Source: Thalia democratica
Lineage: Eukaryota
Length of the DNA stretch: 64,000 bases
Assembly: GCA_965202585.1 (NCBI GenBank)
Contig: OZ241832.1
Coordinates: 17,484,001-17,548,000, forward strand
Reading direction: 5' to 3'
The position numbers and the translations under genes were made by a program. The notes under the pieces were generated by a model. That model ran no database searches. It had not been told where the DNA came from and was given only the letters and a program-made list of their open reading frames with translations. Below are positions 1-51,564 of the stretch, piece after piece; position 1 is the stretch's first letter, and every line of letters starts with the position of its first letter.

Positions 1-3000
1 AAAATCTTCTAAAATGAAGCATTAAACAGGATTTACATCGACATTTACAAACTTATTATAAAAAAAATGTTTTCCAACAGTTTTTTTACTACATTAACTA
101 TCCTTAACCTTTAACATACTGTCCACAAGAATTTGTTATACCAACATTTAGTTTCTTTGTTATGCTTTTGATGATAAACAAGACATTAGACAATTGATGA
201 TGATATAAAAAACAAAAGAAAATTAATATCAATTCGATTAACAGGGAGGGACGACAAGCATTGTTACGTCATAAAAACTGAAATATGCTTTAAACAAAGC
301 ATGACTCTTTTCAAGTATTAAAACATACAACAAACATACTTCAAAGTATCAGCAAACCAATATTAAAGTTTATTTGTTTACATTTTAAAACATTGAGAAT
401 TTTTGTAGGTATAAAAACTAAATACGTTAATTACGCCGTAAACTGAGACTAATATGCAAGCATAAGAACGAAATTAAAAACTTGAAGTATACAAACAAAA
501 CTTTTAGTGACATCAGAAAGAAAGATACTTTTAGTCTTCTAATTAATCTGAAAAAAAAATTCAACAGTTTAATTCAGTAGATGAAAACCTTATAATATGA
601 CTCAAAAAAAATACAAATTACATTTCAAAACCTTTTTAGCATATTACGAAAAACTACCGCAAAACAAAGTTAATATTTTCCATCTTGACATCGTTGATAT
701 CAACCACATGTTGTTGTTGTGATACCACATGAAGCACTGTGTTTCATTATGACGTAACAAACAAGACGTATGCGGCGTGTTTATATACATGTATAATTTC
801 TCCTTCTGTATATCGTGCTGCAACTTTCGCAAAAAATACATTTGCTTGCCTTGCAGCAGCCAAAAATTGATCTTAAAACAAGTAAAATATCGAAATGAAA
901 TATCATACGTTACCACTTTTTGTAATAAATTTTGTTTTGATGTTTTAGTTAAATTAAAATCTTAGAAAAGGTAACTGCTAGAAAAAAAGAAAGTAGTACA
1001 AATTATTTTTTTAAGTTCTAAATCATTTTGAAAACTTTATTTGCATTGAATTAAGACAAAAGTAATTTCAAAAAACTGTTAAAAACTCTAGTATAGCCTG
1101 ATAAAGTAAAGATTAAAATATTTCTATAACTTGTAAAACATACTTGTTTTATGATTAGCTTTAAAAACTTAATCAAATTTTAATAAAACAATTTGAAAAA
1201 ACTCAAGTTTAAACTACCAAAAACTAAAATTTTTTGTAATAACAACTGTCAATCTTTGTAAAAACAAAGTCTTTGTGACATCATAAAGCAATATGAACGA
1301 TGCAATAAAAACTTTATAATCACCTTTTGCTATGTGGATATTTGTTAAACGAGTCTTTCAATGTTTTGGCAAACAATTTAGTTGTAAAATTTTTATAATA
1401 ATTTTCAATAACTAGTATAATTTTTAATAGTTTTTAAATTAATAAAATGCTTTATTTAATGACTCATTGCTACGTTTCTGTTAAAAGTAAACTTCTACAG
1501 AACAATCTGATTGTTTTTAGATATATAATTTATTCTCTACACCATATAAAATATATATAGTTGTTTTAAAATAAGGCAATCAACTACATATTTATACTGA
1601 AACGTCACATGAAGCAATATGTTTTATTATGACGTCACACACGAAACGTATGCGGCCACTATATCGCATGGCGAATGCGGCGGATATAGTATCTGTATAT
1701 TTTTTCCTTCTTAATGTTATGCTGCGTTTTTAGTGAGAAATACATTTGCTTGCCTTGCAGCAGCAAAAACTGATCTTAAAATGAGGAATATATCGAAATG
1801 AAATATTATTCGTTACCACTTTTTGTAATAAATTTTCGCTTTTGGTGTTTTAGTTGAAGCAAGACTTGAAAAAGTTAACCCCCAAAAAATGTGATTGAAT
1901 ATTTAAGAAAAAGAGTTCTAACTTATTTTGAAAACAGTCAAAGCCTTGATCTGCTATGAATAAAGTCGGTAACTGTTTGTTAATAACTGTAATGATGTCA
2001 ACAAAATAACCATAAAAATTTTTATAACTTATAATATACTTGATTAAAGCTTAAACCTTAAACTAAATCAAGTTTCTAATAGAAAAGCTTAAAAAAAACT
2101 AGTATAAACCTGTAATTTTTTTTTTGTAGTAACAAAGATTAATCGTTGTAATAACAAAGTGTTTATGACATCATAAAGCACTATGAACGGAGGCAGTTGT
2201 AATGTAATAAAACTTTACAATCACCGTTTGTTTTTTGGATATTTGTTAATATATTTTGACAGCAGTGTTTTGAAAGCTGTTAAAACTAATTTATCTCGCT
2301 CTTACTTGTTGATTTATCACTATGTTTGTTGAAAAGTAAGTTTCGATACGAACTGTTTTATTGTTTTTAGCTGTATAATGTGATAGCTTTATTTTTAAAA
2401 ATGTATAGAATAGTTTCTTGGCTATGTTTACACTAATCATTTAAACTATTAAAACATTTTATGACTCGTTATACTTTTCTAACAAGTTTTATAAAGTTTT
2501 GAAGTCAGGTTTTTAGTTAAAAAATTGTAAGTTTTATTTTAGTGTATATAATTATGTTTAAAATATAGAAAAAAAATGATGATACTGTTTTTAATTTCTA
2601 AAACAAACTAAGAAATATTTAGTAAACGAAACTTAGTTTTGAATACAGCATTAGAGTTATTATTATAAAAAGGTTTAAAATACAGTAATAATGTAATACC
2701 AAAAAAAAAACATCTAATATAACTAATATATATACTATGTCATGTTTCGTATCGACAAAATAAAAAAAAATATAACGGCTATTTAAATAGACTACTCACA
2801 AGAATAATTTGTAGCTGTCTACAAAACTAACTTAAAATTTTAGTTTGCACTGAAACAACTTTGAACTTGTCCATATACTTTGCATATCAAGTTTTAAATG
2901 TTTTAGCTACCAAGTTACTAAAATACGTAAATTTCTAAATGCTTCTTCAGTTTAAATAAATAATAAACTTAGCAAAATAAACACATTTCTCATGACAAAC

Positions 3001-3092
3001 TAAGCCGGACTTCCATGAGGGTAAAGTAAGTAAAAGGAAATAAGTACGAAAAAATACGAAAAAGCTAATGCGTTAGTGACTAGTAAAAGAGC

Positions 3093-3200
3093 GATGTCAC
3101 TTTAGCACGGCGTCAGTTTATCACTGAGTGACACTTTAGTTACACAGAGCGTAACTTTGTCATGAAGTGGCATTTTAACAACGAGTAAAACTTTGAGCTT
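3093..3200. repeat. Shorter homologue of the ~18-bp tandem array (about 6 units)
   Basis: Shares CGTCA.T.TATCACTGAGTGACA.TTTA with 24443-24470 and sits at the equivalent position in U1. Confidence 0.65.
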
Positions 3201-4762
3201 GAGTTTAAACTCTTTTAATTAAAAATACAAAATAATGTAAATTAAGTTAAGTTAAATGTTCAACTGATTATTTTAAAATCATTTTGTTACCAGGTGAAAT
3301 ATTTTTAAAACTTTATATATTGAAGTGGCATAACAAGTTTTCTGTTATACTTTTGTTTCTCATTCACAATAAAAGTGAAAAAAGGCAAGGTGTCTTTGTT
3401 TTTAGTTAATGAAAGTAAAAATGTTAGATGAAGAAACTATTGTTGTTTTCAGAGTTGTTATAAAAAATAAGTCTAATAAAAATAACAGTTCATTAAACAA
3501 CTTAAAGATAAACTCTTAAATTTTTGTTTTATACTTTAAGTAAAAATTTTTAAAAATAACTAGACTTATTTATTTTTATGTTCTAATGGTGAATTAAAAT
3601 GCTTAAATAAATAAATATATATATATATATATATAAATGTGCAATAATTTTAATTTTAGGGGTAAATCGAAAAATTTTCAAAAATTTCAATTAGCACCTA
3701 CTTCGTGAAATTTAGGATTTTTACACTTATGTTAAACACTTTTGATTAAACAACAATTACTTACAGTAGTTAGATTAGTGACTAGTTAGTGCTGACTGTT
3801 TATTTTAAGCTTTGTATGAAATGTCAAAAAAATTAGAAATGTATTATACGTGTTTGCAGTAAGCTTAAAACTATTTTTAATGATGATTAAGTTATTTTTT
3901 TGTGCCCTTTAAACTTTTATTTTCAATGTTTCAATTAGTTAAAACGACTAGGTTTAAAATTTTTAAGTTTGTTTTAATTTTTTTGTTTTAAAAAATTGTT
4001 CTAAAATAAACATTTGTTAACGATAATAAATAAAATTATAAAAAAAAGCTACAAACTTAACAATCACCATAAATATATTATCACTGAGGTTTATAAAATA
4101 AAACAAGTTGCCACACACACTAGCATTACATATAAATGAACCGATGATTGAGTTTTTACGTGTCTTAATTTAAACTCACAAAAAAGGGGGTTTATAATCC
4201 TCCCTTTATAACTCTCTTCAATCATCGAGTAACGCTTAGAATCTTCTTACAAAAAAATTGCACTTGATAGATGAATTCTTGCTGAACTATTAAAAATAGA
4301 TGTATTCGATTTGCCAGCATTAACAATAACTCACAATAAGTTTTCTTGGTTTTTATTTTGCTTCGATTTTTTTTTAATTAGTAATTTGAAAATAACGACT
4401 TTATGCATGAGTTTAAGTTTATCAACAAGCGTACTTAAACTAAATTCATTATAGATCTGACAGACAAAAAACAAGTACACAAAAACGGTGTCTAATTTTA
4501 TTAAAGTAACCCAAGTTAAATCATTTAAAATATATCATATTACGGTTGCTTGCGTATACAAGTATCCAGATCATTTTACAATTTGCGGCTTAAATATTTG
4601 TATTCTGCAAGTTATGCAGCAGTTTGTGCCAAGTTTGTGTTTTGTAAACCTGCCAATAAAGTGAATCCGATCATGTAACATAAAACTAACAAAAGCCATA
4701 ATACTACTATCACACGCGCCAATAAAAAGAAAGCGGTCATCCTACAACATGTAACCATAACA

Positions 4763-5030
4763 CTACAACTTAACACTAAATTGAAACATAATTGAGAGAA
4801 TGTGTGTCTCTTCAAACACAAACAATAGGTACATTCAAAATAATTAAACTTTTAACCTTTTTTATTCTGATTACCAATTTAGTCAGATCAACCAATTAAC
4901 CTATGTGCTCAGCTGTGTGTCTTTTATATCTCGACCAAATATTTCCATAGCAAGAACAAGGTAACTATGCAATTACAACAGCTATGCACATTTTCATTTT
5001 TACTATTTTTCTCCGATAAGCTTGTTAGTA
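4763..5030 (+). promoter_or_regulatory. Block B copy in U1 (candidate donor AAG|GTAACT at 4961)
   Basis: Conserved GTCTCTTCAAACACAAACAA, TAGTCA.ATCAACC, CTCAGCTGTGTG, TTTCCATAG.AA and AAGGTAACTATGCAA. Function is inferred. Confidence 0.4.
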
Positions 5031-6917
5031 AACAAATTTTATCTGCGGTATTATTTTTGCGAAAGGGTTAATCAAAGCCTGCATCGCTCGATTTTAGCGA
5101 GTATAGTTGTTCCATGAGCCAAAAAGATCAAAATGTTCGGCTAGCCTCGTTATTTTGCTGTAAGGAGTAGCTAAGGTGGTAAAAACGAGTAGTTTACTTT
5201 CATTAAAAGTCTCATTAAAATTAGAAAAGCTGATTCATTGTTTTTAAATGAGTTAGTGTTAGTTGGTTACAATTATGAAAAATAAAGGTTTAAAGCAACA
5301 ATTTTACTGTCATTTAATGAAAGAATAGTTACAATGTAAGAAAAAATGTTTAAATGCTAAATGACTGTCAAAATCGATTATATACTTCGACTCTTTTAGA
5401 TAAAAAACTAACGTTAACTTTTGGACGTTTTAATTTCGCGCTTAAATTGATACAAGTTTTCTTGTTTACAAATGAACTTGAACTACTAATGAAATTTGAT
5501 ATTTACTACAAAAGAAATCAATTTGTAAGTTATCTCGCACTTTCTACGTTTCATAACAAAAATGCTATTTAAAAAATAGTTAACTGTTATTTGGTTTACA
5601 AAGTCAAGATTGATGCTAATTTGTTTCACCTTTAAAACTTAAACTTTTACTATCACTATTCATATAGTTATGTTTTTCAAGTTTAACCTTATTTACTAAA
5701 GTAAGTGCAAGATAATTTGTAGTAATAATTAATGTAATATTTACAGGTGTGCACTAATTAAATTTGAAGAATGGTGAAGTTTTTAAACTATATGTAAAAC
5801 ATGAGCTTTAATTATTAACACTTAATTATAATAAATGGCTATTGTAATCATCTCCTACATTAAAAGATAAACTAATTATTAATAAAAGTTGTAATTTGTT
5901 TTTTTATTTTTATTAAAAATAAGGGAAGAGAATTTTACATTTTTATTCGAAATTTGTCGATAATTTAGGCACGTGCCAAATTAAATGTAAACTGTTGAAT
6001 ACAATTAAACCTATGATTTGTAAATTACTTTGATAGTTCATCAATAAGTTTTGTTCAAGTAAAATAAATCGAAGTTTTTCTCTGAAAAAAAAAATATGTA
6101 CATTTTGATAGACTTTTAATATTTTTTCAATGATATTTGTAACTAAACAACTATTAGTTTAACAGCAAATTAGTTACTTGGCAAAGAATACCCGTAGATA
6201 TACGACGGATAAATCTTCTTTACAATAATTTTTCAAATTCAAAAAACAAAGTATGTTTTTGTAAAAATAATTAAGAGCTTTATAAAATGTAAGCAAAGGT
6301 TTCATATGTAAATTAATTAATTAACTTTATATGTTTAGTTAAAATTTGTTTTCACAACTTTTGATCTCTCTTATTTTACCTATAAGCACAGTAATATACT
6401 TTATTTGTATTTAGTGTACTCAAAGCTTATTAAACTTTCAATAGGTGCTTTTCCAAAAGCTTAGGTTGTTAACTAAACATTTCTTACAGTGTTTCTTAAC
6501 TAACTTGTATGCCTTGTTGATAAAAAAAAAAAACAGCTAGCTTATTATGTGCTGTATCAGGTGATATTATGTTTTAAATTTTTACAAAATGAGACTATCT
6601 AAATACGAACTGCAAACAATTTCCATGCTATTTTAATTTTACAGCAATAAAAAACAATAATGATGTTTTGGAAACAGAATTTTGCTACATAAAGTTACAC
6701 ATAAAGAAAATTAAGAGCGCTTGCCAATGTTTAACTACTTCCTTTACGACAATGAAACTTAGTTAGACCTATAAATAAAAACACCTACAAAATTACTTTA
6801 AAAAATATATTTTTTTAAATGATTTAATTATATAAAAAGTTTTGATATTTTAATGGCGAAATAAATAAAAATCCAAATGGGTTTCTATCGTCTCCAAAGT
6901 TATAGAAAAAATATACA

Positions 6918-6931
6918 GTTGCCATGGCGAC
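6918..6931 (-). promoter_or_regulatory. RFX X-box motif (GTCGCCATGGCAAC on the - strand)
   Basis: GTTGCCATGGCGAC at 6918-6931 is a near-palindromic match to the established X-box consensus GTHNYYATRRNAAC. Motif match only. Confidence 0.5.
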
Positions 6932-7034
6932 AAGAAAAAACTGTTGACGGACAGGAAAAGTATTAAATAAAAAAGCGATTTTCAGTTTTTTGTTTTTAAT
7001 GCAGTGTTGCATGCTTTTTAAAAGAAAATTCTTA

Positions 7035-7960
7035 AAAGATGAAAACCAAAGAAACCAAAATAACTTCTTATCTCGAGGTAATTACAAAATGACCAATCGT
7101 CTAAATTTGCCATAAAATAAAATAGAACTTAATACAAAAAAATATTTTGTATTCTACCTTCTCACATCAAGGTCTAAGTAATTGACTATGGTCTTTCTAG
7201 GTTTTGCTGGAAGTTTGATACATTAGCTTAGTCAGAACATTACTTTACTTAGTATTTCAAGCTGTTTTTATTACATTACTGTTTTTTCTATAATAAAAAA
7301 TATTTCTTTTGTAGTTTTTAAACTTTCTAAACAAAAATATCAAAATCTTCTTTGTCCTTGTTAAGCTCATACTTACCTAAATATCGCTTTTAACTATTTT
7401 CTAGTTTTTATCAGTTTAATATTAAAGCGTTTTAACAAAAGTTATGTATTAAAACTTGGTATGAAACTTCATTTTGAGCAAAACAAACATATTTGTTGTT
7501 TATCACCTACTTTATGACCAATTGTAAGTCATATTACTTCAGTAATTTTTTTTAATTGTTGCATATCTCATTACCAATTTCATGGTCAGTAAGAACACGA
7601 TATTTACTTGATGAATGTTCATATCACATCAAACAAACTACATAAAAAAAACCAACATAATGTTTTTGTAAAAACGCACAAAAAAACTTTCAAGGTTCAA
7701 CCTGTAAAAACATGGCACTGACTTTTTTTCTCTGACTGTTATTGTCGGGGTTAACAGTTTAATCTTGATAAGTTAAAATTCCAACATAATATCTTACCGA
7801 TAAATTGTGTGATTGTGAGATGAAAGTAACTACTGTTCATAATGTGTATAAGAGAATTGGCACTTAAACATATGTTTTGAGAGCCTCTTACACACTACAT
7901 GGCTGGCATTTTATCTAGTAACACTTTTACTTGATGCTACTCATAACAATTAAATTTCCA
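7035..7960. repeat. Non-coding blocks homologous to the Flrt intron (55135-56260)
   Basis: The exact 21-mer TTACCAATTTCATGGTCAGTA occurs at 7571-7591, 29222-29242 and 55900-55920. The colinear blocks 'AAGATGAAAA...TCTAAATTTG' and 'AGATGAAAG...TAATGTG' are also shared. Confidence 0.85.
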
Positions 7961-10900
7961 TTTTCAACAGCTTAACAATAGAGAAACATGAAAAATTTTT
8001 AGTTTTGTCGAAGTTTAAAGACTTATGTATGTTATCATAAAACATTACTAACTCGTAAACCAACCTTTTTTGACGATTAATAAGCCAGTATTTATGTGAA
8101 TTTCATTCAGATTGTATATTTTAAAGTATATATTTTACTTACATCGAACAATGTTTTGTTTTTAAATATTATTAATTGAAAATTTATGTCATAGTTATTA
8201 GGAAAAAGCGAATATAATACTTAGGTATTAACAAAACTGTTGTAAAAACGAACAAAGCTAACTTATTTAAATATAAGATATACTTTTTAGATTTTAAACA
8301 TGTTAATTTATAAAAAATATATTGTTTAATAATTATAATGTGAAAACTATAAAAACTTTTAGTTGTTCGAAGTAGCTGATATTAAAAACTATTTTTATAT
8401 TAAATTGTCTATTTTTATTGGAATATTTTTTTTTATTATACTACGTACATTAAGAAATTCTATTAAGCCAAAAATGTGTTAAGTAGTTTTTAAAGCTTTA
8501 AAGTTTTCAGAAAGAAGTACTTTTCGTATTTTTTATTTATTATTATTTTCTTGAATTTTTTGTTTATCACATTTTTGACAAATTAATTTGTATATATAAA
8601 TCTATAATTCAGGCATGTTTTAAAGATAGTTTTTTAGCTTGAAATTTACTGCAAAAGGTTGTTTAATATGTAAAAATTATTAACATGTTGAACGATTTCG
8701 ACATAAAATTTATATAATTCTGATAAATTGTTTTATTAAAGCTACTGCTTACTTTTCATACTAACCTAAGTTGTATTTGTAACACTGTTAAGAAATATGT
8801 TATCTGTATATATAACTGGTCACGACCATACAATTAGTCATAAAACAAAAAATAATTATTGATAGTAGTTTTACTTAACTAATTTTATTAATGATAATTG
8901 TACTAATTTTAACTTCCATTTCAAGTTTAAAAAAAAAATATTAAAAAAGACTAAACGTCGTAAGTGTAATAAAGTTTAAATTTATTTATTATTATTTGTC
9001 TATCTATCAGCTAGTTTCGTCAATCTACACATGTTCACTAACTACTGAGAAAGATTGTACAAAACCTACTAAGTCGTTTTACCTTACCAAGTTCAGGTCA
9101 TATATACTATACATACTTAAGCTTAAAGTATTAACGTATAAGTTGTATAATTTATATGTTAATTATTTCAAATACAATGTACATTTTTTATCAATCTTTA
9201 AAAAAGCTATTTAAAACAAATAATTTTGTGAGAATCATATTCTTTCTTTTAACTTATATTGTTGACAAGTTTTTTTGAACTTTTTTGGCTAAACCTGTTT
9301 ACAGCTAGCTGCTATTTATTAGTATGACATTTTATTTTCTTTAACATCTTTTATGTATATTATGGTTTGTACTTTAATGGTTTGTTTTATTAATTACTGT
9401 TATTTTGAAAGGTTAAGTTTTTGATTTATTGCAATATTATTGTATTTTAAATCTTCACTATATTAAAACTTTTTTTTCAAATTTTTATTAAACGTCAGTT
9501 TCCTATAAGTGAAACAAGTTAAATATTGTTTATAGTAGTAAAAATTATAAATTAAAGTTAAAAGTTATTGTTTTATTCTAGTCAAGACTATTTAAAAAAT
9601 TTAATATTACTTATTATTGTAAAGAGTGTTTGTTATTTAGAAACTATTCATAAAAATTTTTACAGACTTGAAAAAATGAAAAAGAACTAAATACAAACAT
9701 TAGTACATGATAAATACAAATATTTGAAAGAAAATCGATCTAAAAATTAAGCATTTACATCTAGTTGAAAAAACTTGTCTATGAACTGTTAATGTCTGTG
9801 GTGAACTTGATAACATGTTTCAATGTTTGTATTTGCTTGTTTTTATGTTGTTTGAATGAAATAAATTCTCTAATCATAACACATTTGCTGTAGTTTTATA
9901 CATTTAGCCTTGACTTTCCTACATTTATCGAAAACACGGAAAAACTTTAATTCGTTTTATTTTTTGATTCTATTAAACTATTTCTTTTTTTTCATACAGA
10001 ATTTTGTTTTGATATACAGATATAATTTTCAGGGCTTTTTTTTACTTTATGGTTATGATTTATTGTTTTTTTATTGAATAATAAAGTATTTGGTATTGGA
10101 TTTAGTTTAACTTTGTAGTCAGTTATAAGTTGCTATGATATAATTAACAGTTAGATTTTTTATTTATTTATTATTTTTAATTTAGTTAAGTTTACAAAAA
10201 AAAGATTAGTAATACTAATTATAGAAAGTATATTTATAGCGCAGTTGTTAGTTTTAGTTATTATGAACTAATTACACTACTTTGTGTTGACGGGTATAAT
10301 TTAATACCAAATAGTAATTTATTAGTATTCCCAGTAGACATCGATATTCGATACAAGCTTCATTAATGTGTTAAATTCGTCTAAAAACTTTTATTTTAAT
10401 TAGTTTAAACAGTTCAAACTAGTCTTTTGTCAATTTACTTTAACAACCAGTTGCTAAAAATGTTTATTTAACAACTGTTTTTTCATCTTTTTTCAGCATA
10501 TAACTAAGTTAGAATTTTATTGAAGGCTTAAGAGTAATTATTTATAGTGTAAGTGTTATTTGTAACTATTAATTACACTACTTAGTGGTGACGGATATAA
10601 TTTAACACCAGACAGTAATTTGTTTTTTATGTATTCCCAGTAGACATATATATGAACTTCATTAATGTTTTACAATCGTCTAAATTTAGTTTTATTATAT
10701 TTTAATGCATCTACAAAACTTATTCAAGTTTTTAAAATAAACAATTTACACTGGTTGCTAAACATGTTTATTTCCAACAGTTTGTTTGATCTATTTTCAG
10801 CAGATAATTAGAGTAAAATTTTTATTGAAGGCTGCCAAAGTTAATAGTAAACTAAACATTTGTTCTTACTTTAGTACATTGTTTATTTTGTATCTAGCTT

Positions 10901-12052: not shown

Positions 12053-12178
12053 TTAAAGAGGCGACTTAAGATGTTGCAGTGTTTAGTGTAAACTCGGCAG
12101 GAGAGAAAAATCCAGTTTACAAAACAATAACCCGGAAAATCATTCAAGCGTGAAATGAGCCCCCATATCAGGTTACCT
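12053..12178. other. Highly conserved 126-bp non-coding element (copy in U2)
   Basis: 125/126 identical to 43459-43584. Decayed copies at ~23095-23200 and ~33370-33460. Confidence 0.85.
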
Positions 12179-35674: not shown

Positions 35675-35970
35675 TTAACACTAAATTGAAATATAATCGG
35701 GAGAATGCGTGTCTCTTCAAACACAAACAAAAGGTACATTCTAAATAATCAAACTTTTAACCTTCTTTGTCGATTACCACGCTAGTCACATCAACCAATT
35801 AACCTATATGCTCAGCTGTGTGCCTTTGATATCTCGACCCAATATTTCCATAGCAATAACAAGGTAACTATGCAACTTCGACAGCTATCCACACTTTCAA
35901 ATCAGCTGTTTTTGTCGATATTTTTCTTACTAAATTCGCCTACAAGCTTATTATGATAACTGTTTTCACG
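35675..35970 (+). promoter_or_regulatory. Block B copy in U4 (candidate donor AAG|GTAACT at 35864)
   Basis: Same motifs; CCTTTGATAT TCF-like site. Confidence 0.4.
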
Positions 35971-39004: not shown

Positions 39005-42000
39005 AATTTTTTACACCTTATGAGAAAAGCTGTATAAAACTCTTTAAATCTTTTTACCTTACCAAGTTATTGTCATAAGCAATCAACAAACCTCTTATAT
39101 AAATAAACTAATTTACTTACAGATGACAATGTTTAAAATAATCTGTATGTAATCATTTTTATCTTTCTAAAAAAAGCTATTCTTGTAGAAACTACAACGA
39201 AATTTTCACTTATACTGTTGGCAACTATTTTTTTTTAGCTAGACCTATATAACCCTATTTTTTTAGTATTAGGTTCTATTTTCAGGGCATATTTAATGTC
39301 TAACATATACTTCAATAATCTATTTCTATAAATATTTCTTACATAAAAATCTTAATTTACCTTATTTATTTCCGTATGAATATTTAAAAAATTTAAACTA
39401 AATTAATAATTTTGTTTTGAACTTTTACTTGACATGAATTTCCGGTTATTAAAACAAAATAAAATTGTATGTGGATGTCAAAATTTATAAAAAAAACTTA
39501 AAAAGTATAATTTTATTGTATAATTTTATTCGTTTTAATTTGTCAATAAGTGACTGTTATTTTAAAAATATATATATATATAACTTTTTACAGTGTTGTA
39601 TGAAATAAGTAAGTAGAAACATTGTTACAAGGAAAATACAAATATTTAGCGAAAAAGTTGATCTAAAAACTACGCATTTAACATTCAGTTTATAAAAAAA
39701 CTGATAAACTGATAAAAGTAAACTAGATATAGTAAACTTCAAAACATGTTTGAACGTTTTTATCTGCTTGTTTTTATGTTGTTTGACTAAAAATACTTCT
39801 GTAAAACATAACACATGTTGGCTGTAATATTTTACATTTAACCTTGACTTTCCTACTTTTATCAAAGATATTAAGACAAACAATTTATTTGTTTTTCTTT
39901 GTCGATTATTTTTTAAACATTTTAATTTTTACATAGGGCCTTTTCATGGAGATAAAAGTTTCAAGTTTATAAATTTAATTAAATTTTTATACTTTATTTA
40001 TGAATAATAAAGTATTTGAAATAAAAATGAACATTTCTTCAATTGCATTGGAAAACTATTACACATATATTTCAGTTATAAGCAGGGTCGTCTGGTGTGG
40101 TGAGCATTGGAGCAATTTTCACGTAGAAAAAATAAAGAACCTGTCATAAAATTATAAAACTAATAAAACTATTGTTTTTCAAACTAACTTTTGTTTACGA
40201 ACGATTTTTTGTAACTGTAGTATTTCTATTTTACTGAATTAGTTTTAAAAAGTATCTAGTTAAAAGTATTTCAAAAATACTCGTAATTTTTCTGAAGCCG
40301 CTAAAAATATCACGCGTCGCCACTTGTTATTAACCGGTAATAAAAACGTCATTGGTTGATATGATAAGAAGGAAGAGAAAACAAACAATGTTACATCATA
40401 GAATACTAAAAGGTTCAACTGAGTCGTTTTTCCTATAACACATAAAACAAAAATTGCTTCTGATTTTTTTAGTAACATAAAAAAAAACATGTTTAATTAT
40501 TGTCAGGTTAAAAAAAATACTTATGACTTTGTTATTGAAAAGTAAGATTTATTGTATATATTTAGTGTTGAAAGAATATAAAAAAGTGTAGAAAGAATAT
40601 CAAGTAAGAATTAAAGTTGAAAAGGTGTTACTTTTTTATGTAATTTAAAGTTTTAAAAACGTTTCTTTGTTAAACAAAAAAAGTAACACGTGTCATCGTT
40701 CAAACATAAACATCAACCTACAATAATTATTAGTTTCAATATCGTTTATTACTATCTTAAAAAAATAAATTTTTATCAAAACTTATAAAACTACGTTATT
40801 TTTTCTGCAGCACTTTTGTAGTACACCTCCATCTACGCTTTACACAGAACACTTACTAAGTTGATACTTCCACCCTGACATCTCTTATGTAATTTCAAAT
40901 ACATGTTTTATTGAATGAACCTTATTATAATGTCACACAAGAGACGTGTGTAATATTTTTGCTGCATATTGTCGTGACAATTAATTTGAAATACATATTA
41001 CCTAAATAAATATTGTAAACCTTTTTTTTGGCCAAAATTTAATTCTTTGTAAGTTTGTATAGTATTAATAACTTAGTTAAGTTTGAAAAATAAGTTCTAT
41101 CTAGACATTTTTAAATTAATAAGACTTCTATAAATAAAATTAGAATTTTGTACTACGACATTTAATCTTGTATCTATCAAAATTTGTTTACTAATTAAGA
41201 GAACAGAGGTTTATTTTAGTTTATAAACTAGATACGATTGAAAGTTTATTAATATAAAACCAATAGTATGAAAAAATTATAAGTTTAGCTTGTTAACCTT
41301 CACAAGCAAAACAGGAAGAAGTTAAATTTTACTTTTTGTTTTCAGCAAACGAGAACAAATTTGTTACACGCTTAACACTTGCTCAAATTTATGCAAATTG
41401 GCCTATTAAGAGTCGTTTTAAAACAATTCACATATCAAGCAGAATCAAAAAAATCATTAGAGTTTTTACCTGCAACTCAAGATGACATTAAACGAGGGAA
41501 TTCATAATTGTGAGAGAGATGAAAAAAAAGAACTTTAAACCTTCAACAAAGCCAGTTTTGATTTTTCTTTGTTGGTGGCAGAACAATAAAGTTTTTATAT
41601 ACATTTTATTTTTGTTTGATAAAATAGCTCTATGTTAGCATTTTAATTTTAAATAAGTTTTAATTAACTTTTTTAGTTAGTTACAATCTGGCTTAACATA
41701 AACTAGATTTTTATACTTGGAACTATCATTAAAACCTGTATCTTTGTTATTAGTTTCACACAGTTAAAACTTTAAATAAGTAGTAGTAAACTTGTATATT
41801 TATACTTGGAGTTATTTTACAACTTAAGAGTAATTATTTATAGTGTAGTTGTGAATTGTAACTATTAATTACACTACTTAGTGGTGACGGATATAATTTA
41901 ACACCAGACAATAGTTTGTTTGTTATGTATTCCCAGTAGACATATATATGAACTTCATTAATGTTTTACATTCGTCTAAATTTTATTTTGTTATATTTTA

Positions 42001-43458
42001 ATGCATCTACGAAACTTATTCAACTTTTCAAAATAAACAATTTAAACTGTTTTTTTATAAACTTATATTAACAACAGGTTGTAAAACATGTTTATTTCCA
42101 ACAGTTTGTTTGATCTATTTCTAGTGTATATTTAGGGTAAAATTTTTATTGAAAGCCGCCAAAATTAGTTGTAAACTAAACATTTGTTCTTACTTTAGTA
42201 CATTGTTTATTTTGTTTTTAGCTTTAATGTTACAAGGCTTTTAAGTTTTTTTGTGAGGTTTTTTTTGGCAGTAAACTTAGCATGTGTTTCGTTGTAGAAA
42301 CTTTTTGTTAAAACTTTGAGGTAAAAAGTAGTGAAAATGTCAATGAATTCATAAGTTTTTACAGATGACACAAAAAGTTTCCAGATTTAGACGTTGATTT
42401 ATAAAAATTAGATTTAACCTGGTTAGTTATTATAGTAATAACTAATTTTCTATTTTGTTATTAATATCATATTGTTCGTTTTATGTTTGTATTTAAGGTA
42501 AACCTAAGCTTTTACATGATAATTTAAAATACATAGTGACATTTATAAATCTTATCTTTAATCAATTTGCTGATATTGTAAACAAAATCATTTGTTTTAA
42601 AGTTATAACTTCTCACTACGCAGTCGAAAATAGCAGTGTTTTTTTTAATTGCATCATAGATTATATAAATGTAGGTAATAAATTTATATATTTATGAATA
42701 AGTAGACGTTTTCTGTAGTCAAAACAAATTAGAACTAGTATTTATATCTGGCTGATATCATTGTGACCATTCAATTCAACTTGAGCATTTAGATTTCAAT
42801 TCTTTCCTAATTGCATGTTTTTTCATTTAATTTATCAAATTTTAAAACCCCTTTGTAAATACAACTTCGCCTTGCTTCATTGGTAATGTTTTGAAAATAC
42901 TTAGAATCGAAGCAGTTTGGTTTTAAGATTTTGTTTTGATAATTTAGATTTATTTTTAAGTTTTTATAGGCTAACATAATTTGCTTTTTTAACTAAGCAA
43001 GTTTGACAACTAAAATTTAAATATTATATATTTATTAATAATATACCAATACTAAAAGTTTATTTTATAGTTTTGACCTGTCAACTATTTAATTTGTTAT
43101 TTATATTCTAAAATTCATGTCAAAGGCATTCTTAGCTTTTAATATTAATACTTATACTAGAAAATGCTTTATTCAACTAATAAAACAATAAAGCATCAAG
43201 CAATTAAGTTCGTGATTAACTTATTGCCAATAGCTTTAAAAATTTTGTTTTACGTAGTAGATTAATTTTAAATTACAAATAAGTACATAAACTTTAGACT
43301 TGCAAATAGAAATGTTTTAACTTTCAAGCTGCTTAATTCAAGTTACAAAACAAATCAAGTTTTAGTTTTAGATATAAACACATTTGTTTGGTTAATTAGG
43401 TATCATTGAACTGACACTAAGTTTAGCTCTTCATTCAAGTGAAAGTACAAAACCTATG

Positions 43459-43584
43459 TTAAAGAGGCGACTTAAGATGTTGCAGTGTTTAGTGTAAACT
43501 CGGCAGGAGAGAAAAATCCAGTTTACAAAACAATAACCCGGAAAATTATTCAAGCGTGAAATGAGCCCCCATATCAGGTTACCT
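43459..43584. other. Highly conserved 126-bp non-coding element (copy in U5)
   Basis: 125/126 identical to 12053-12178. Confidence 0.85.
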
Positions 43585-44409
43585 ACTTTTTGTTTGACAA
43601 AAAACACTTCAAAAAAGTCACTTGTTAAAATTCTTCTGAAAGTCTCTTTAAAATATTAATTTTTTCTTTAAAGTTTAAAGTTTAAACCTTGTGTTTTTTA
43701 TTTTGTAGCTCGATTTGGCAAATTTGTATGATTTTTTGTTAGATATCAGATATTAAATAATTTGAAAGATTAACTTGTGCAACAAAAAGTCGAGTTAAAA
43801 GCTAACGGTTGCGGCAACTTTTTAAAATTTTGTATTTAGTATAAAAGTTATGTGTGGCAAAACACTTCAAAAAACTGTTTAAAAGAATTTTTAAGTTAAA
43901 TTAAATTACGCCAAGTGTAGCTAATGGGAAACAATAAAAATAATTTAACATTTTTAACTTAAACTTAATGGGAGTTTGAACGATCCTAAAGTTATGATCA
44001 TTGTAAAATGTTCTTTTAAAGTTTAACTACCTTTAAGACTTTTACTTATTTACTTTTCTGGAATCTTGATCAAGAATTGTTTTCAAATGATGACAAGTTT
44101 AATGCCAAAACTTTTCTACAAAATGTCATTAAAAATAAATAGTTTTATCAAAAAAGACCGTTGTGAGTCAATGAAAAAAAAAAATTGTCTTGTCAAAACA
44201 AACAGTTTATTTAAAAATGACAGTTAATTCATTAAGCTGGAAGTTTGAGGTTGTTATAAAAATGAAGAAACGACGCGCTGTTGAAGTTTGAAGCTAAACA
44301 AAAGTTGACTTTCCAAAATAACAAGCTCGAAATGCGATTATGACTTTATTGTTTGAGCGCATTCGACAACGACTAGTATAAGAGAGTTTTTGATAAACGA
44401 ATTGAAGTG

Positions 44410-44640
44410 AGAATTGTTAATACTTGATCGTCTCATAGATTTATAAAAAGTGTTTATATATTATTGTTTGTCTTGGGTTATATGTCACGTCTACTTGAAA
44501 TACATTTATGTTAGTTTTATAACAGGTTTTTGACGTAGTAGTTGATGTATGAGTTATTAACAATGAATCGTCTACTTGGTTGTTGATAAATTGCTCAAAT
44601 ACTATTATTTGTCTCGGGTTATATGTCACGTCTATTTGAA
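44410..44640. repeat. Internal ~150-bp tandem duplication of a conserved block (…GGGTTATATGTCACGTCTA(C/T)TTGAAA)
   Basis: Two copies (~44410-44500 and ~44560-44640). The block is single-copy in U2 (~12900-12980) and U4 (~34220-34305). Confidence 0.8.
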
Positions 44641-46069
44641 ATTTATTTTTATTATCAGACGTCTGTGAAGTAGACGCACAGTCTATTAAATTGCTTTAAT
44701 GGTTGCTATTATCAATATATTTGATTTATCGATTGGTCTAAATCTTTTTTGTTGCGACAATGATATCAAAACAGATTTGTTCCAAGTTTTTTGGTTGAAC
44801 TATTTTGAACAAGTTGCTTATAAATTGTGCTTAAAAGGTAATAAATTTATCGAACAAGTGCTACAGAAATAAATACACTGTTTAGCTAAATAACTCATGT
44901 TATTAACATTGCTCAAGTAGCTCTTCACCGAATGTTTATTTTTTTATTAACTTTGCAAATAAAACAAACCACAGGTCTTATAATTTCTATTTGGTGAAAA
45001 TTAAGATTAATTATTCAATAAAAGACTGTGTTTAACGTCAGAATTGTTATGTAATCAAAGGTTTAGCAAAAATATATTTATATAGCATAAATTTTTATCT
45101 TATACAATGTAAAAATAAAAGTGTTTTTGATTTAAACTTATAAGTAAAGTAAATTAAATATTTTTCATTTCGCTTTAGATAACCAAATTAGTTTTTAGAA
45201 TAAAGTTTAGCAGGGTATTGCGTAAGTTAAATTTTAAAGCAAATATATAAAATAAAACTATTTAATTTTGTCATGCTAAAATGTTAAGTTCGTTACATTT
45301 GAAAAGTTATTTCTTAATTTTAAACATTTGTATTTAAGTATTTAAAATACATAATTGATTTATACGAATTAGACTAAGAACTTGTTAAGTATGAGAGTTT
45401 AATTAAACTTCATTTCAACTTAAAGCCATGATTCGAAAACAAAATAAATGAAATTTAAATACTAAAAAACATAACACTGAAATTCAAGTCTAGGTACTAG
45501 TTTCAAATTATAGTTTATTATTATTTATATTCGTTTCATATTGCAGTTTTTTAAACATGTAATCATAATTTTACTATTATCTTAAAGCTAATTAACACTA
45601 CTACTATAAATTTTTCAGTACGTTAATTATGTATTACATTACGTACATCAATTAAGTAAACTTTTAAAAAAAGACGCAATAAATCTGTAAGTAAACGATA
45701 TCAAAAAAAAGATTAAATGAAAAATTTCATAATATTTTATTATACAAATAAAATTAAATAAATAAAAACATTGCATTAATATTATTAGTTTAAATATAAC
45801 ACAACTGTTAAAAAAATCAGTTAACTCTTGTAACTTTAAATCTAAAACATACATATAATAGAAAAATTTTAACTAACTTTAAGTAGATATTAGCTACTGT
45901 TTGGTATGGATAAAATTTGCACTAAAACTTTCAATTATATATACTACGTAAGATATGCACTTTTGCTTGAGTTCAACGTGCGTATCTTATCGGTGTTCCT
46001 ACAGTAGTTCCATTATGGTAATAAAACCAAAAGTTTATCCACAACGGTCAAAAAACAAGTTAAAATAAT

Positions 46070-46680
46070 TTAGCACTAAATTGACACGTAATCTAAAAAC
46101 ACGCGTGCTATTTCATACACAAACAAAAGATACGTTGCAAATAGTTAAACTTTTAACCCTTTTCGTAAAATTGTTCCTATAACTACGCTAGTCACATCAA
46201 CCAATAAACCTAAAAACACAGCCTTGTACCTTTGATATCACGCCCCAATATTTTGATAGCAACAATAAGGTAATTATGCAATTTCGACAGCTACGCAAAC
46301 TTTCAATTTTACTATATTTGTACTAATTTCGACGATAAGCTTGTTAGTATGTTGACAATTTTTACGCGGGGCTAAATTGTTGTTTTTGCGTGGAGGATAA
46401 ATCGAGTTCGCTTCGTTTGATTTCGGCGAAGTTGTTTGATTTTTTTCCAAAATAAATATCTCACGACCCATCAGCTAGCTTCAATTTTTTTGTGCGGGGG
46501 CTTTTGTGCAACTACGATAGCTACGCACACTTTCAATTTGGGTAGTTTTTGTATTAATTTAGCCGATAGCCTTGTTAGTTTGTAAACTATTTCACGCGCA
46601 TAGTATAACTCGAGCTCACCTCGCTCGAAATTAACGTTTTTAGCTGTTTTTTTGTGCCAAAATCAACAAAAAACTCCGTA
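46070..46680 (+). promoter_or_regulatory. Block B of U5: CpG-enriched promoter-like region with a candidate + strand donor AAG|GTAATT at 46270
   Basis: Locally CG-rich (ACGCGGGG, CACGCGC, GGCGAAG), with a TCF-like CCTTTGAT. Homologues occur at 4763-5030, 26161-26460 and 35675-35970. Function is inferred. Confidence 0.45.
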
Positions 46681-49600
46681 AACTTTAGTATTTTGGCTTA
46701 ATAAGCACTGGAGGTGATCTTTAGTAAGAAAAAAAAATGTAGTAAATAGTTTCCTAGTCTATAGAATGTCAGAATATGTATTTGAAAATAAATTCAAACT
46801 TTTTTAGTAAACTGTGTTCTTTACCTTGCAAATGTAAGAAAAAAATCGTCTTTGAAATTATCTCTTATTTTTCTCACCTGTTAACTGATGTCAAAAACTT
46901 TAAGCAGAAAAATTATCTATTGTTTGATTCTCATAAAACTTTAATTTAAAATCTCTACGGAGAATGTTTTTCAAGAAATTTGGAACAACAAACTTATTAA
47001 GTTTTATTTACATTATCAAACAAAGAATATAGGTTGATCAAAGCGTTTATAAACTTCAACTCTTTTAAAACATGTTTACTGTAAAATTATTACGAATCGC
47101 TTAATAAGTTTAAAAGTTCTTTAAAAAAAATCAAGTTTCTTGGAATCTCTGTAACTGAAGCCGAAATGTTTATGCAACATCTAATTAACTGACTAACTAC
47201 TTTCAACTAAATACAATGCAGAATATTTTACAACTGCCTTTGTAGATCAATGATGAGATTATAATTTTACTGTTTTAAATCACCTGACAGGTACTTTGAT
47301 CATTAAAAAAACATGTTTTAATTGTTATGTTTTACTTTTTATTTTTTACAATAATAGCAATAAAGCTTTGAACTTACATGTAAAGGCTTTAAATATACAC
47401 TTCAAAGATATTTTTGCTCAGTTTATTAACTCAACTTTTTTTAAGTATTTTTTTCATAAAAAAAAACAAGCTTTTAGCTTTCAAAAACGTATTTGATAAC
47501 TAAAGTTTTTAGATATTATTAATTTTCAATGTAATTTTATGACAAAAAAACTATTTTGAAAGATCTAAAAACTAAAAGAAAGGTACTTTGTGGTGTATAT
47601 ATAAAACACTTGAATCGCAATAAACATTAAGTATTTGTTTTTTGTAGAGATTACATCGAAATTAAATGGTCAATTTAAACCAATGTTGGTCGAAATATAT
47701 AAATTTAACTTATTTATACTAAAGTTAGCTTTAGTTTTGTTTTTTCTTATAACTGACAAACTAATGTTTTAAAAAAATAACTATAACAAAATTTTGTATA
47801 TTAATAGTTTAAATTGTTTCTTTGAAATAACTAAATTAAAAAAATTTAATAGCATATATATTTAATAGCTAAATTATAAAAGCATAACTAATTAGTAAAC
47901 AGCATGTTATAACTTTAACTTTTAACACTGAACTAGCAAATTAACAACTTCGCATTTAAAATACTTTATCTAAATTTTAAAACTTATTAGTTGTTATGTG
48001 TGAATCAAAGAGAGTAGTTTACGTGTAAAAAATGCGAGAAAATTTGTGTTTGCTGTTAAATTGCTAAATTAAACACCTTTAACACATTATTTTAAATAGC
48101 AGTATGTTAAACGTTGTTATTAAAGGCATCACTGTAATGACAAAGTACATTGTTTTTATTTACGTCATATTAACACTAGTCTGATAAAGATCAAACCAAA
48201 ACAATTATCACAAAATTCTCCATATGTTTGCAGTACACTACACTTAAAACTGTGTTTGAGAGTGTGTTTAAATGAAAAACCAAACATTTTTCGTTTGTCT
48301 TTACCCTTTAAGCTGTTTTCATAGTAAAATGTAAAATTCATGTATAAATATATACTTCTGAGATTGAAACAAGAGTATATTTTTGATTATACTTAGCAAT
48401 TTTCATGTATTTAATTCCCGATAAGACCTCTTCACAGTTTTTCAAACACACATAAACGTCTGTCAACAACACGTGCTAAAATATCAATCAAAACCACGTA
48501 CAAGTAAATAAGAAGTTCAATTGTACAGAGAAGCTCAATCGAGCAACAGTTGATTTTAAAGTTATATTTTGCAAAATATCGGCAAAATTTTATTTATCAA
48601 ACAGGCGTCGACCGGTGAAGATTAAGTTTTTAATTTAATGTTTGCCTTATCAAAATTTTAAGTGAGATTTTAACTTTTTTGTTTAATAAATGTTGATTTT
48701 ACAGAAAAAAAGTGCTAAAGTCAAGTGTTATAAGCATTTTTTATGAAAGTATGCTATTGTGTTTTTTAGTAAATGTTCTTCATAATTGTCTTTAATATTT
48801 TACAAGTGTAGTTTAAATTGAAAAATAAGAAAAATGTTAAAGTAAATTAATAACGTGTGTTTACCTTTTAATGATAACAAGTTTTTTAGGCTAGCTTTTT
48901 TTTAGAACTATATTTGATAAGTTGGGCTTAATTTTAAAACTTAAACCTTAAGTTGAATTTCGCTCAGCTAGGATAGAAAAGCAAGTTATATTTTACATAA
49001 GGATACTTTGTATCAATATTTAAGCAATTTCGTTATTAGAACCACTATTTCTTTACAAAAGTTATAAAAGTCAATAAAGTTACGTTAAAAATTAAGATTT
49101 TTTTTTGTTTAAAACCTTAATTCCACATAAACTAGCTTCTTCTTACAAGTGTTTACATCTTTATAGTCACTAATCGCATTATAACTAAACGCTGAATTCA
49201 CCTTGAGGCTAAAAGGTTTTATTGAGGATTCAAAAAGTCCAAACAATTATTTTAACGAGAAAAAAAGTAAATATAGTTTGCTAAACTGTCTGAACTACAC
49301 AAAAAAAGTTTGTTATACAAAATTAAGTTATTACTTTTATTCTAATATCATGTTTGAAGAATCTAATACTTGTTGTTTGTAAAAATTATGCAATTAAAAT
49401 CCCTATGTTTTTTGTTCTCTGTAGTCTAAAGCAAGATTGTTTAGTGAGTAAACTATAAATCACATAAAACTAATTTTTACATTTTTACCAAAATATCTCT
49501 TAATCGTAGTTGTTGTAAATCATTATGTACATATCGGACTTTGTGTAAAATACTTCAAACATTTTATTTTTATAAAATATCTAAATGATTTCACATATCA

Positions 49601-50676
49601 TAGAATTTAAACGTTGCGGCAATATTTACACTTCTTTGTTCAAATGATCTTTATTGATGCACGTGATTTTTTGTTTTGTTCTAGATACGTGACAACTTTA
49701 AGTTTAAAATTAGTAGAAGAATAGGAGTATAAAGGTTTTTAATCTGGAAAGGTTTTGAAGTTTGGTCTCTTTTTATTTGCTTTTAGATTTAAACAGTTAT
49801 TTAGAACAAGTAAAGATTAATACTAAGTATTCCAACGAACAGACCATTTTTTGTTTTTGGGAAAATAACGTTTCTGTATAAGTTTTGTTTTTGCTTTATG
49901 TTACATTAAGACAATATTTTACGCTGTTCACTTGTTTGGATCTGATCAAAAATGAAGTTAGAAAATATGGTTTATACTTTAAAAAAAATAAGTATGTAAT
50001 TATTAAAAACTTCTAGAACTAAAAAAATGTGCGCTTTAATTTTTTACATTTTTGAGCAGACGGGAATATTTCTGTTATACTCATATGATAAAAGTTGTAT
50101 AATAATTTTGAACAATAGTTTTAGTTATTTTAATTAAAAAAAAAAATTATAAAAAAATTAAATACTATTTTTCTTAATACAAGCACAGCTTTTTAGTTTG
50201 CAGTTAGTAGTTTATTATTGGAAACTTATATTTTAAACTTTGTTTACATTTCTACAAATAGAATTAAACAAACCTAAAAAAAAAATTATCTGTTTAACCC
50301 TCTAGTACTTGAGTATATAACAGCTTTTTCGTAGGATCTTAAACACTTTTAATTATCTACTAGTTTTTTGAAGATTTATATTACTGGTCAAGTTTTTAGT
50401 TCATTGAAAAAAACTTTTATAATAGCTGAGCCGTCATCTTTACATATGCAAAAAATAGTTTGCATTTATGTAAACCGTAGAAAATAGCACAGATTTAATG
50501 CTATGTTTTTCGATATATGTTTTTATATGGAAAATAAATTTGTTGAGATTAAAATTAATTTATTGCCCATTATTGCTTTAACCATAATACTTATATTCTT
50601 TTATCATAAGTAAAATTAAAGCTGTTCTAAAAATAGTCATTTGAACGATTATTTCTGTTTTAATTGTTTCCACATT

Positions 50677-50935
50677 AAGGGCACGGAAAAATGTTACACT
50701 TTTTGAAATTTTCCGACAACCGGTTGCGTGTCTAATTTAATGTAAACTTTCTTCGCAATGGCAATTATTTTGAAGAATCGTCACGTTTTATTTGCACTCG
50801 TCACTCAGAAATCACTCAAAAAAAAGTGACGCCGTGACAAAAACTTAAGAAGCTCTCATTGTCTATGAAGTCATATTAAAATTTTATTTTGTTGAATGTT
50901 CTTGATATCATTCTTTCGAGCAAAATTTTATATCT
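50677..50935. promoter_or_regulatory. Proximal conserved block with clustered CGTCA/GTGAC motifs ~0.65-0.9 kb upstream of the ATG
   Basis: TCGTCACG, TCGTCACT, GTGACGCCGTGAC. Homologues at 5921-5995, 18675-18940 and 27738-27850. Confidence 0.45.
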
Positions 50936-51498
50936 TTTACAAAAACAGAGTTAATTTCAACACTTAAATTAGCAACTAGTAGTTAGTAGACAATAATTTA
51001 AGGCAGTAAATAGTTTCGTAAATTATCAGCTCACTTACAATAACTTATACTTTAAGACGTGACATATGCTTATAGCTACATAAAACTGCACACACTTGTG
51101 TGAGTATAAACTCGAAATTCAAATCAATGTTTAATTAAACCGTTTTTATTAACAAGTACCTTGATTGTCATGATAAAAGTTTAGCTTATTTTTTAATAAC
51201 AAAGAAAATATTTATATACAAATAAAATATCATACCTTTACTGTTTTTAAAGTTTTTTATTATTTTATTTTTTATAATGTAAACAAAGCGAAACGAGCTA
51301 AACACTAGATATAAATGAGTTGTATATTAAAAAAGATTTTATTACAGTCAAGTATTTACGACGCTATACGACAATAAATTTATGTTTTGTAAAGTCGCAC
51401 AAAACATAAATTAGTTTATATTAACATTTAATTACTTTTTTAATTGCAATGAAGATTTTAGAAAGTTTAATAAGAATTTTAGAGAAAAAAAATGTACG

Positions 51499-51507
51499 AT
51501 TTTTCAG
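51499..51507 (+). other. Candidate 3' splice acceptor (cis or SL trans-splice) 57 nt upstream of the FLRT ATG
   Basis: ATTTTTCAG ending at 51507, with no ATG-initiated coding sequence needed upstream. Vertebrate FLRT genes have non-coding 5' exons. Confidence 0.45.
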
Positions 51508-51564
51508 AAAAGCAAAGACAGTTAATAAATAATTAAATGATATTGGATTAAGACAATATGTAAA

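Follow-up and report, generated by a model that had tools for sequence, protein, structure and literature searches.

A tandem array of diverged non-coding duplications beside a single FLRT homologue in Thalia democratica, with conserved islands that may be cis-regulatory modules

Duplicated conserved non-coding elements (dCNEs) are non-coding stretches that persist beside developmental paralogues once a gene or a genome has been duplicated. General background on conserved non-coding elements is found in PMC3826495. Related modules also arise locally, beside one gene: among shadow-enhancer sets, 18% of those in fly and 34% of those in mouse were reported to carry signatures of local duplication, and the examples include a tandem duplication of several enhancers and nine related enhancers grouped at Gata4 (PMC13345019). 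Here we describe a locus in Thalia democratica (GCA_965202585.1, contig OZ241832.1, positions 17,484,001 to 17,548,000; this whole stretch of 64,000 nucleotides is referred to as the window, and coordinates are those of the window) in which five diverged non-coding units stand upstream of one coding copy of an FLRT homologue. FLRT is a guidance and adhesion receptor reported in vertebrates only, according to a 2022 review (PMC10084454). From comparison of the paralogous copies, we give a probability of roughly 0.55 to the reading that the array consists of old duplications of FLRT-surrounding DNA, and that its conserved islands are putative FLRT cis-regulatory modules under purifying selection.

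Self-BLAST of the window revealed a direct-repeat array spanning approximately 600-51211, with 63 to 73 forward matches, length-weighted offsets clustering at 10-11, 21-22, and 31-32 kb, and high-scoring segment pairs (HSPs) of up to 1.6 kb at 67-85% identity. No true inverted matches among units were found by self-BLAST, the reverse strand giving two trivial palindromes only. Chaining and alignment of the units set their boundaries, and resolved the array into five plus-strand units of ~8-12 kb, belonging to two tiers, in the order X1 (601-8011), Y1 (9247-19290), X2 (19354-29598), Y2 (30069-38700), Y3 (39203-51211), and FLRT exon 1. Y1, Y2, and Y3 align with one another over most of their length (67-85% in HSPs), X1 and X2 align at 68-81%, and X can be aligned with Y at a handful of islands only. 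X1 and X2 are copies of an older type, without the FLRT exon; Y1 carries all 17 of the conserved blocks shared by the Y units, Y2 carries these and a further block, S, while Y3, the most complete copy, adjoins the gene and carries the 17 blocks, S, and a promoter-proximal block. The units are direct, collinear, head-to-tail, and low-copy, as in a tandem segmental duplication. A preliminary description of this DNA had proposed five units (U1 to U5, corresponding to X1, Y1, X2, Y2, and Y3) that all repeat the same 15-20 blocks, the last unit abutting the only coding gene. This observation was partly confirmed: the direct repeats, the number of units, and the position of the last one next to the only long open reading frame (ORF) were all recovered, but the units are two-tiered rather than equal, and the common set of blocks, 17 in number, is that of Y1, Y2, and Y3, with few of them in X2 and fewer in X1. 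The sequence at 1-600 and at 56800-64000 did not match the units significantly, and the array therefore appears to start close to position 600 and to stop inside FLRT intron 1.

Blocks were defined as 41-column windows with three-way identity of at least 0.70, a threshold set in advance. Alignment of Y1, Y2, and Y3 yielded 17 ordered blocks of 42-318 columns each (1,762 columns in total), giving islands of 40-335 bp that make up ~17% of unit sequence. In Y1, blocks 1 to 6 lie at 9695-9773, 9810-9854, 10566-10673, 10766-10982, 11824-11868, and 12106-12213, blocks 7 to 12 at 12671-12712, 12767-12809, 12880-12998, 13011-13082, 13200-13285, and 13803-13879, and blocks 13 to 17 at 15312-15368, 15495-15637, 16363-16677, 17117-17231, and 17309-17383. 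Profile searches (nhmmer), carried out block by block, found all three Y copies for all 17. The best-conserved non-coding core is that of block 6 (Y1 12053-12213), the paralogues of which lie in Y3 (43459-43618, ~99-100% identical to Y1 over 125 nt), in Y2 (33371-33495, with a 35-nt deletion), and in X2 (23055-23200, ~90% identity, with a 32-nt deletion). Block 15 is the longest three-way block at ~335 bp (Y1 16354-16686, Y2 37346-37674, Y3 48405-48740) and shows 80-81% identity in every pair. Outside the common set, the Y units differ in what they retain. Y1 lacks block S (Y2 35672-35973, Y3 46067-46458) and ~1.7 kb common to Y2 and Y3, carries an inserted miniature inverted-repeat transposable element (MITE), and has at its 3' end (18590-19290) a duplicate of the promoter-proximal DNA of FLRT, reaching to ~-350. 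Y2 lacks the block corresponding to 11278-11575, part of the block-6 core, and 1.5-2.5 kb of promoter-proximal sequence. Y3, with its promoter-proximal block at 50591-50957, is free of all large deletions found in the other units. Minor secondary tandem duplications occur within each Y unit: one of ~300 bp doubles block 3 in Y1 (10231-10833), one of ~140 bp doubles block 9 in Y3 (44377-44654), and Y2 holds a perfect 38-bp repeat of 2.1 copies (31339-31417).

Conservation along the Y units was far from uniform. Mean pair identity in gap-free three-way columns was 0.688, and the variance of identity among 50-column windows was 0.0099 versus 0.0025 for permuted columns (maximum 0.0037), a ratio of 3.9. 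The same variance was 3.3 times that of homogeneous simulations (0.0030; three simulations that started from Y3, included indels, and were aligned by identical MAFFT settings), and windows of at least 0.85 identity numbered 11 out of 148 in the real alignment versus 0-1 in the simulations. Over-dispersion was also found in four of six contiguous, BLAST-supported homologous stretches (2.7-4.8-fold, p<=0.0015). Composition-corrected three-taxon branch lengths for Y1/Y2/Y3 were 0.091/0.109/0.100 in blocks and 0.312/0.231/0.209 in aligned non-block columns, so that blocks evolved 2-3.4 times more slowly than aligned spacers in each Y copy, with the distal copies no faster than the proximal one; singletons in blocks were likewise balanced across the three (122/145/133). 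A partly independent check came from the segments still alignable between X and Y or the gene, which are the same islands. Hence the proposal that blocks are clearly better conserved than the AT-rich spacers was upheld by the variance, simulation, contiguous-stretch, and branch-length results, and divergence did not become equal once alignability bias was controlled, the excess over simulated variance being the 3.3-fold one given above. As judged from these alignments, the difference in rate between blocks and spacers exceeds alignment bias, which makes purifying selection on what would be duplicated cis-regulatory modules the best reading. Selection would extend to the distal Y copies, because unconstrained distal lineages would have drifted to the spacer level. 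The earlier suggestion of selection on the blocks therefore fits the slow rates in all Y copies and the retention of islands in the X units, within a comparison confined to paralogues. The array is also old. Contigs from sequencing run X3 (run labels are distinct from unit names), whose organism is a relative diverged by 1-4%, match Y1-specific spacers at 96-99%, and because they match Y1-specific sequence the array is placed before the split from that relative.

Relatedness among the Y copies was mostly star-like, with exceptions. A Sawyer-type test on polymorphic columns identified a few runs exceeding the longest in 1,000 permutations, the significant conversion-like runs being Y1-Y2 at 11948-11978 and Y1-Y3 at 10677-10714, and window counts placed Y1 10445-10750 closest to Y3 and 11762-12150 closest to Y2, most other windows being star-like. 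These data bear on a tentative alternative of clearly lower probability, in which the distal units are dead relics in neutral decay and their islands resemble one another through gene conversion from the proximal copy or through mutational cold spots; conversion favours stretches that are already similar, and only Y3 and the intron blocks would then regulate FLRT. Mosaic relatedness with its significant Y1-Y3 and Y1-Y2 runs is what such a history would leave, as are the near-identity of Y1 and Y3 over 125 nt between unalignable flanks, the deletions inside cores and the loss of whole modules from distal copies, the status of Y3 as the most complete copy, and the lack of a clear block deficit among the run-X3 differences listed (40 of 385). 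However, most blocks are equidistant among the Y copies (~80-89% in all pairs) with balanced singletons, unlike the outcome of recent conversion from a master copy; Y1-Y2 block identity equals that of Y1-Y3 and Y2-Y3, where free drift predicts the spacer level; and the much older X copies keep the same blocks at 85-90%. The array reads as a mosaic with a few gene-conversion patches, and conversion alone would be insufficient to account for block conservation because relatedness among the Y copies is mostly star-like and their divergence equal and moderate. Purifying selection on the islands is accordingly preferred to relic decay in what follows.

The preliminary description had also excluded the blocks as exons of a coding paralogue family on the grounds of frameshifting indels between copies, and the block audit agreed, with 1-nt indels, no 3-periodicity, and, for most blocks, at least one copy that is closed by stops in all frames. 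When six-frame ORF pieces were compared all against all by BLASTP, one and the same block gave matches in several frames and on either strand, and ORF pieces of at least 55 aa across the array were read as AT-rich noise. That the units are nevertheless small-exon coding paralogues or pseudogenes missed by the ORF scan is barely credible. Read on the minus strand, the segment 12031-12258 has an open frame in three copies, with a six-frame match of 71 aa, yet its plus-strand frames match too, and it carries the 35-nt (Y2) and 32-nt (X2) deletions. Similarly, the variable sites of the X block at 7500-7640 fall 2/11/3 by codon position (p~0.01, chi-square), but this was one of 26 blocks tested, and the pattern disappeared in a three-way alignment with the intron copy added. 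Each of the remaining blocks is interrupted by stops in every frame or carries 1-nt indels, and tblastn searches of the units with the FLRT proteins gave no match beyond chance. Coding exons were rejected on the strength of the stops, 1-nt indels, core deletions, lack of periodicity, and tblastn searches.

Structured RNA fared no better as a candidate, and was rejected on three results: Rfam returned 0 hits, ARAGORN returned 0 tRNA hits, and no block folded better than its shuffles (z -1.9 to +1.5; 17 blocks, three copies, two strands). A related explanation, which we consider quite unlikely, is that the units are non-coding transcription units in which the duplicated promoter-proximal blocks fire and the islands are exons of long non-coding RNAs (lncRNAs) or of small-RNA precursors, or processing signals. 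The promoter-proximal block of FLRT survives in three additional copies (5803-6013, 18595-19290, and 27627-27829), and these do keep a conserved core, as this explanation would require. On the other hand, Rfam gave no match and the folding signal was absent in all blocks on either strand, Y2 lacks the promoter-proximal block yet holds all 17 blocks, and lncRNA exons are usually less conserved than the islands of this array.

The genome is rich in MITEs, and two of them lie within the array. A hAT-like MITE of 708 bp (13899-14606) sits in a Y1 spacer, outside the repeat unit, with 12-nt terminal inverted repeats (TIRs; CAGGGACGTAGC / CAGGGTCGTAGC) and an 8-bp target-site duplication, GATTAATG, at 13891-13898 and 14607-14614; a second, of ~400 bp, lies in X2 at 27860-28264, directly after the copy of the promoter-proximal block, and its TIRs begin TTTGCAGTACAGTGC. 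Both make it conceivable, though highly improbable, that the blocks themselves are fragments of transposable elements or dispersed repeats whose recurrence is unrelated to FLRT. Word depth was scrutinized with Logan contigs on Y1 10400-16399, using two DNA-like runs (X1 and X3), a metagenome (X4), and a near-empty run (X5) from the same sample as run X1; none of the runs containing the locus was identifiable as RNA, their library types being unrecorded. The hAT-like MITE served as an internal dispersed-repeat control: over 13800-14800 summed word depth was 65,000-390,000 versus a baseline of ~200 in two runs, and the element is therefore present in thousands of copies genome-wide. In blocks and spacers alike, summed word depth was ~100-500, at most ~4-6 times baseline, and reached its peak, 719/1343, over block 6, which has four local copies that cross-match at 85% likeness. 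The blocks are locus-specific, because their word depth is near baseline while that of the MITE is ~1000 times baseline. Unlike transposable elements, the blocks have no TIRs or target-site duplications, and from unit to unit their order, orientation, and spacing are strictly kept. For an invariant 22-mer of block 6, 0.01 occurrences would be expected in the window; it has four, only at array positions, and 0 in JGI metagenome contigs. The blocks were accordingly rejected as a dispersed repeat or transposable element given their near-baseline depth, their fixed order, and the contrast with the MITE; the possibility that they match such a family, which had been named in advance as one that would undo the proposal, was thus not borne out.

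Whereas the Y units resemble the DNA immediately upstream of FLRT, the X units resemble the 5' half of the gene region as a whole. Nine blocks are particular to X1 and X2, which have just ~6 in common with Y. Among the Y-block profiles (nhmmer), only blocks 3, 6, and 8 matched X2 (22434-22550, 23145-23200, and 23843-23898) and none matched X1, while profiles built from X1/X2 segments gave a weak block-12 match in both (E 2.6e-5). Block S is present in X1 (4759-5144) and X2 (26147-26564), matching the S copies of Y2 and Y3, and the promoter-proximal block, which lies 0.8-1.0 kb upstream of the FLRT ATG, is present in X1 (5803-6013) and X2 (27627-27829), matching Y1 18595-18756 and Y3 50597-50758 with an alignable core common to the copies. 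The 3' ends of the X units match FLRT intron 1, where conserved non-coding blocks lie on the plus strand at 55060-55251 and 55848-56189 (the latter with E 1e-38; X2 and an intron block of the gene are 87% identical over 93 nt). The corresponding intron-1-like blocks are at ~7000-7150 and 7429-8011 in X1 and at 28335-29598 in X2, all on the plus strand. Upstream of these, also on the plus strand, are block xa, which in X1 holds an internal 880-bp tandem duplication (699-1348 ~ 1579-2249) and which is also found in X2, and block xb (X1 3100-4829, X2 24430-26064). The upstream, promoter-proximal, and intron-1 blocks of the X units thus stand in gene order, and the distance from the promoter-proximal block to the first intron block is ~1 kb in X versus 4.3 kb in the gene, where the 2-kb exon is included. 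When FLRT and three homologues were used as tblastn queries (E<=10), no remnant of the FLRT coding sequence was found in the units, only chance hits of up to 27 aa. X1 lacks ~4 kb of X2 that carries blocks 3, 6, and 8, and both X units lack blocks 13-17. Given blocks collinear in gene order and no coding remnant, X1 and X2 are best described, on present alignments, as ghost copies of the 5' half of the gene minus its coding exon. An 18-bp minisatellite of seven copies (24364-24490) marks the start of xb in X2.

The breakpoints of the units allow a structural history that is well supported by the alignments. Y1 stays in register with Y3 until 19290 (equivalent to ~51211 in Y3) and X2 begins at 19354, which puts the right breakpoint of an [X-Y] duplication ~300-350 bp 5' of the ATG; because this breakpoint lies upstream of the ATG, the coding sequence was excluded. 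Y2 ends at ~38700, equivalent to ~49779 in Y3, which fits an origin of Y2 and Y3 by a further partial duplication. In the proposed sequence of events, a segment reaching from ~10 kb upstream into intron 1 would first have been duplicated, its upstream copy losing the 2-kb coding exon to become the X type; the [X-Y] pair would then have been duplicated with the right breakpoint ~300-350 bp 5' of the ATG, and Y would have been duplicated once more to give X1-Y1-X2-Y2-Y3-FLRT. Unequal crossing-over or gene conversion would subsequently have introduced a few mosaic patches, while deletions took different modules from different distal copies. The direct, collinear units and the X-Y-gene block map are in agreement with the original inference that the non-coding DNA around a single FLRT gene was multiplied by tandem duplication. 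The further claim that this took place without the gene applies to the [X-Y] and Y2/Y3 duplications, which exclude it, and not to the oldest event, which ran from upstream into intron 1.

The coding gene at the end of the array is identifiable as a real FLRT homologue from its predicted product. The window has a G+C content of 25% throughout, the sole richer stretch being 52-54 kb, and the only ORF of at least 150 aa (51565-53607, plus strand) lies inside this stretch; FLRT coding exon 1 was delimited to 51565-53603 on the plus strand by the ORF, Pfam leucine-rich repeat (LRR), and structure matches. At E<=0.01, Pfam recognized LRR families only in this product. Its best PDB matches were the ectodomains of FLRT3 and FLRT2 (E 7.5e-37 to 2e-33), to which residues 29-344 align at 12-327 with few gaps, and an LRRNT, 10 LRRs, and an LRRCT are collinear with FLRT2/3; the next PDB family was SHOC-2 (E 2e-20), far behind, so the Flrt label of the preliminary description holds. 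The translation also contains a hydrophobic helix at approximately residues 473-497 and a beta-rich stretch of ~110 aa, in which no fibronectin type III domain was matched by Pfam. The closest database proteins were three JGI sequences (P0001-P0003; 73%, 64%, and 68% identity) from 1.6-2.6-kb Tara metatranscriptome contigs; for the homologues at 73% and 64% these contigs are 2.6 kb long with a 5' untranslated region (UTR) of just 55-58 nt and no upstream DNA. The Tara homologues extend 85-105 aa past the ORF stop, and the extension partly aligns to 56620-56772. Consistent with a spliced gene, the ORF stop TAA (53605-53607) overlaps a GTAAGT splice donor (53604-53609), and the acceptor 56621/56622 brings the frame back. 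Splicing to this acceptor adds 53 residues (the junction codon and 52 codons before the TGA at 56779-56781), giving a coding exon 2 at 56622-56781 on the plus strand that matches the C-terminal part of P0001-P0003, and an intron 1 of ~3 kb. The identification as FLRT draws on the Pfam LRRs, the FLRT3/FLRT2 matches, the Tara homologues, and the splice-restored frame together. The Tara homologues are ~40 aa longer than the product of exons 1 and 2, so that a third exon probably exists. A short upstream ORF of 4-6 codons (ATGATATTGGAT..., 51538-51552) ends ~10 nt 5' of the FLRT start codon, and two homologous transcripts (L001 29-49; L002 31-51) keep such an ORF in their 5' UTRs although protein identity is only 64-73%.

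The motif list of the preliminary description was tested for enrichment in the blocks, and TGACAG and Fox-like words alone stood out. TGACAG was 12-fold enriched in Y blocks and the Fox-like words TGTTTG/TGTTTA were enriched too, whereas TAATTA was not; such counts are non-independent across paralogues and inflated by paralogy. CGTCA sites resembling the cAMP response element (CRE) occur in the promoter-proximal block. The enrichment of TGACAG and Fox-like words is suggestive of enhancers, and the density of transcription-factor motifs claimed earlier is retained for these words but not for CRE half-sites. Under the favoured reading, the islands would be enhancers and promoter-proximal elements of FLRT, and the duplicated islands would persist as shadow copies, redundant in part, that serve the one surviving coding gene. 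The stronger proposition that the whole landscape, comprising ~17 enhancer-like islands with promoter-proximal and intronic elements, was amplified to 3-5 copies and selected as a device for FLRT dosage or robustness is doubtful. Overall, the preliminary interpretation of a multiplied regulatory landscape under selection was partly supported.

Several points weigh against regarding the islands as selected FLRT modules. One and the same paralogue alignment was used to define the blocks and to measure them, a circularity that the simulations and the X copies mitigate partly. The best-conserved core, that of block 6, is itself damaged, by 35 nt in Y2 and 32 nt in X2, and whole modules are gone from Y1, Y2, and X1, so that constraint on the distal copies is incomplete, as expected for either partly redundant modules or slow decay. 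Within the same block, Y1 and Y3 match at ~99-100% over 125 nt while their flanks have diverged, and this near-identity is probably a gene-conversion patch. In the comparison with run X3, where divergence is small and blocks make up 22% of the sequence compared, six of the 38 non-MITE differences listed fall in blocks versus ~8.3 expected (40 of 385 differences being listed). The CRE half-site TGACG is not enriched in blocks (0.86-fold), and FLRT is assumed to be the target gene from proximity.

If the islands are active, the locus would be an unusually clean natural experiment on the birth and fate of shadow enhancers, with three to five dated paralogous copies of ~17 modules and one promoter in cis, different losses in each copy, and a dead gene copy that was stripped of its exon and its regulatory DNA recruited by the surviving neighbour. 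If they are inactive, it would be a segmental duplication of the ordinary, decaying kind, patched by gene conversion. In either case the locus touches a gene that the 2022 review limits to vertebrates (PMC10084454).

Compared with described systems, the array shares features with three. Like decaying tandem gene duplicates (unitary pseudogenes or ghost copies), the X units preserve the layout of a 5' half minus its exon and have lost modules piecemeal; unlike them, they hold no coding remnant while their islands are kept at 80-90% identity, a reversal of the usual order of decay. As with dCNEs, collinear paralogous islands are conserved above their surroundings beside a gene of developmental or adhesion type, but dCNEs normally accompany two surviving gene copies, whereas here one coding copy remains and the islands of the lost copies lie in cis and in tandem. 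A third likeness is to shadow-enhancer sets such as those of fly CG6325 and mouse Gata4 (PMC13345019). Both they and this locus consist of related non-coding modules near one gene, and in both a contiguous interval holding several modules with their flanks was duplicated, with variable later retention. The sets described there are enhancers, while the islands here are known from their sequence; and the duplicated landscape of ~10 kb, with ~17 islands in 3-5 copies and copies of promoter-proximal and intronic blocks, is larger and more regular. Shadow enhancers formed by local duplication are thus already documented, and the FLRT array would be a large, regular new example accompanied by exon-less ghosts.

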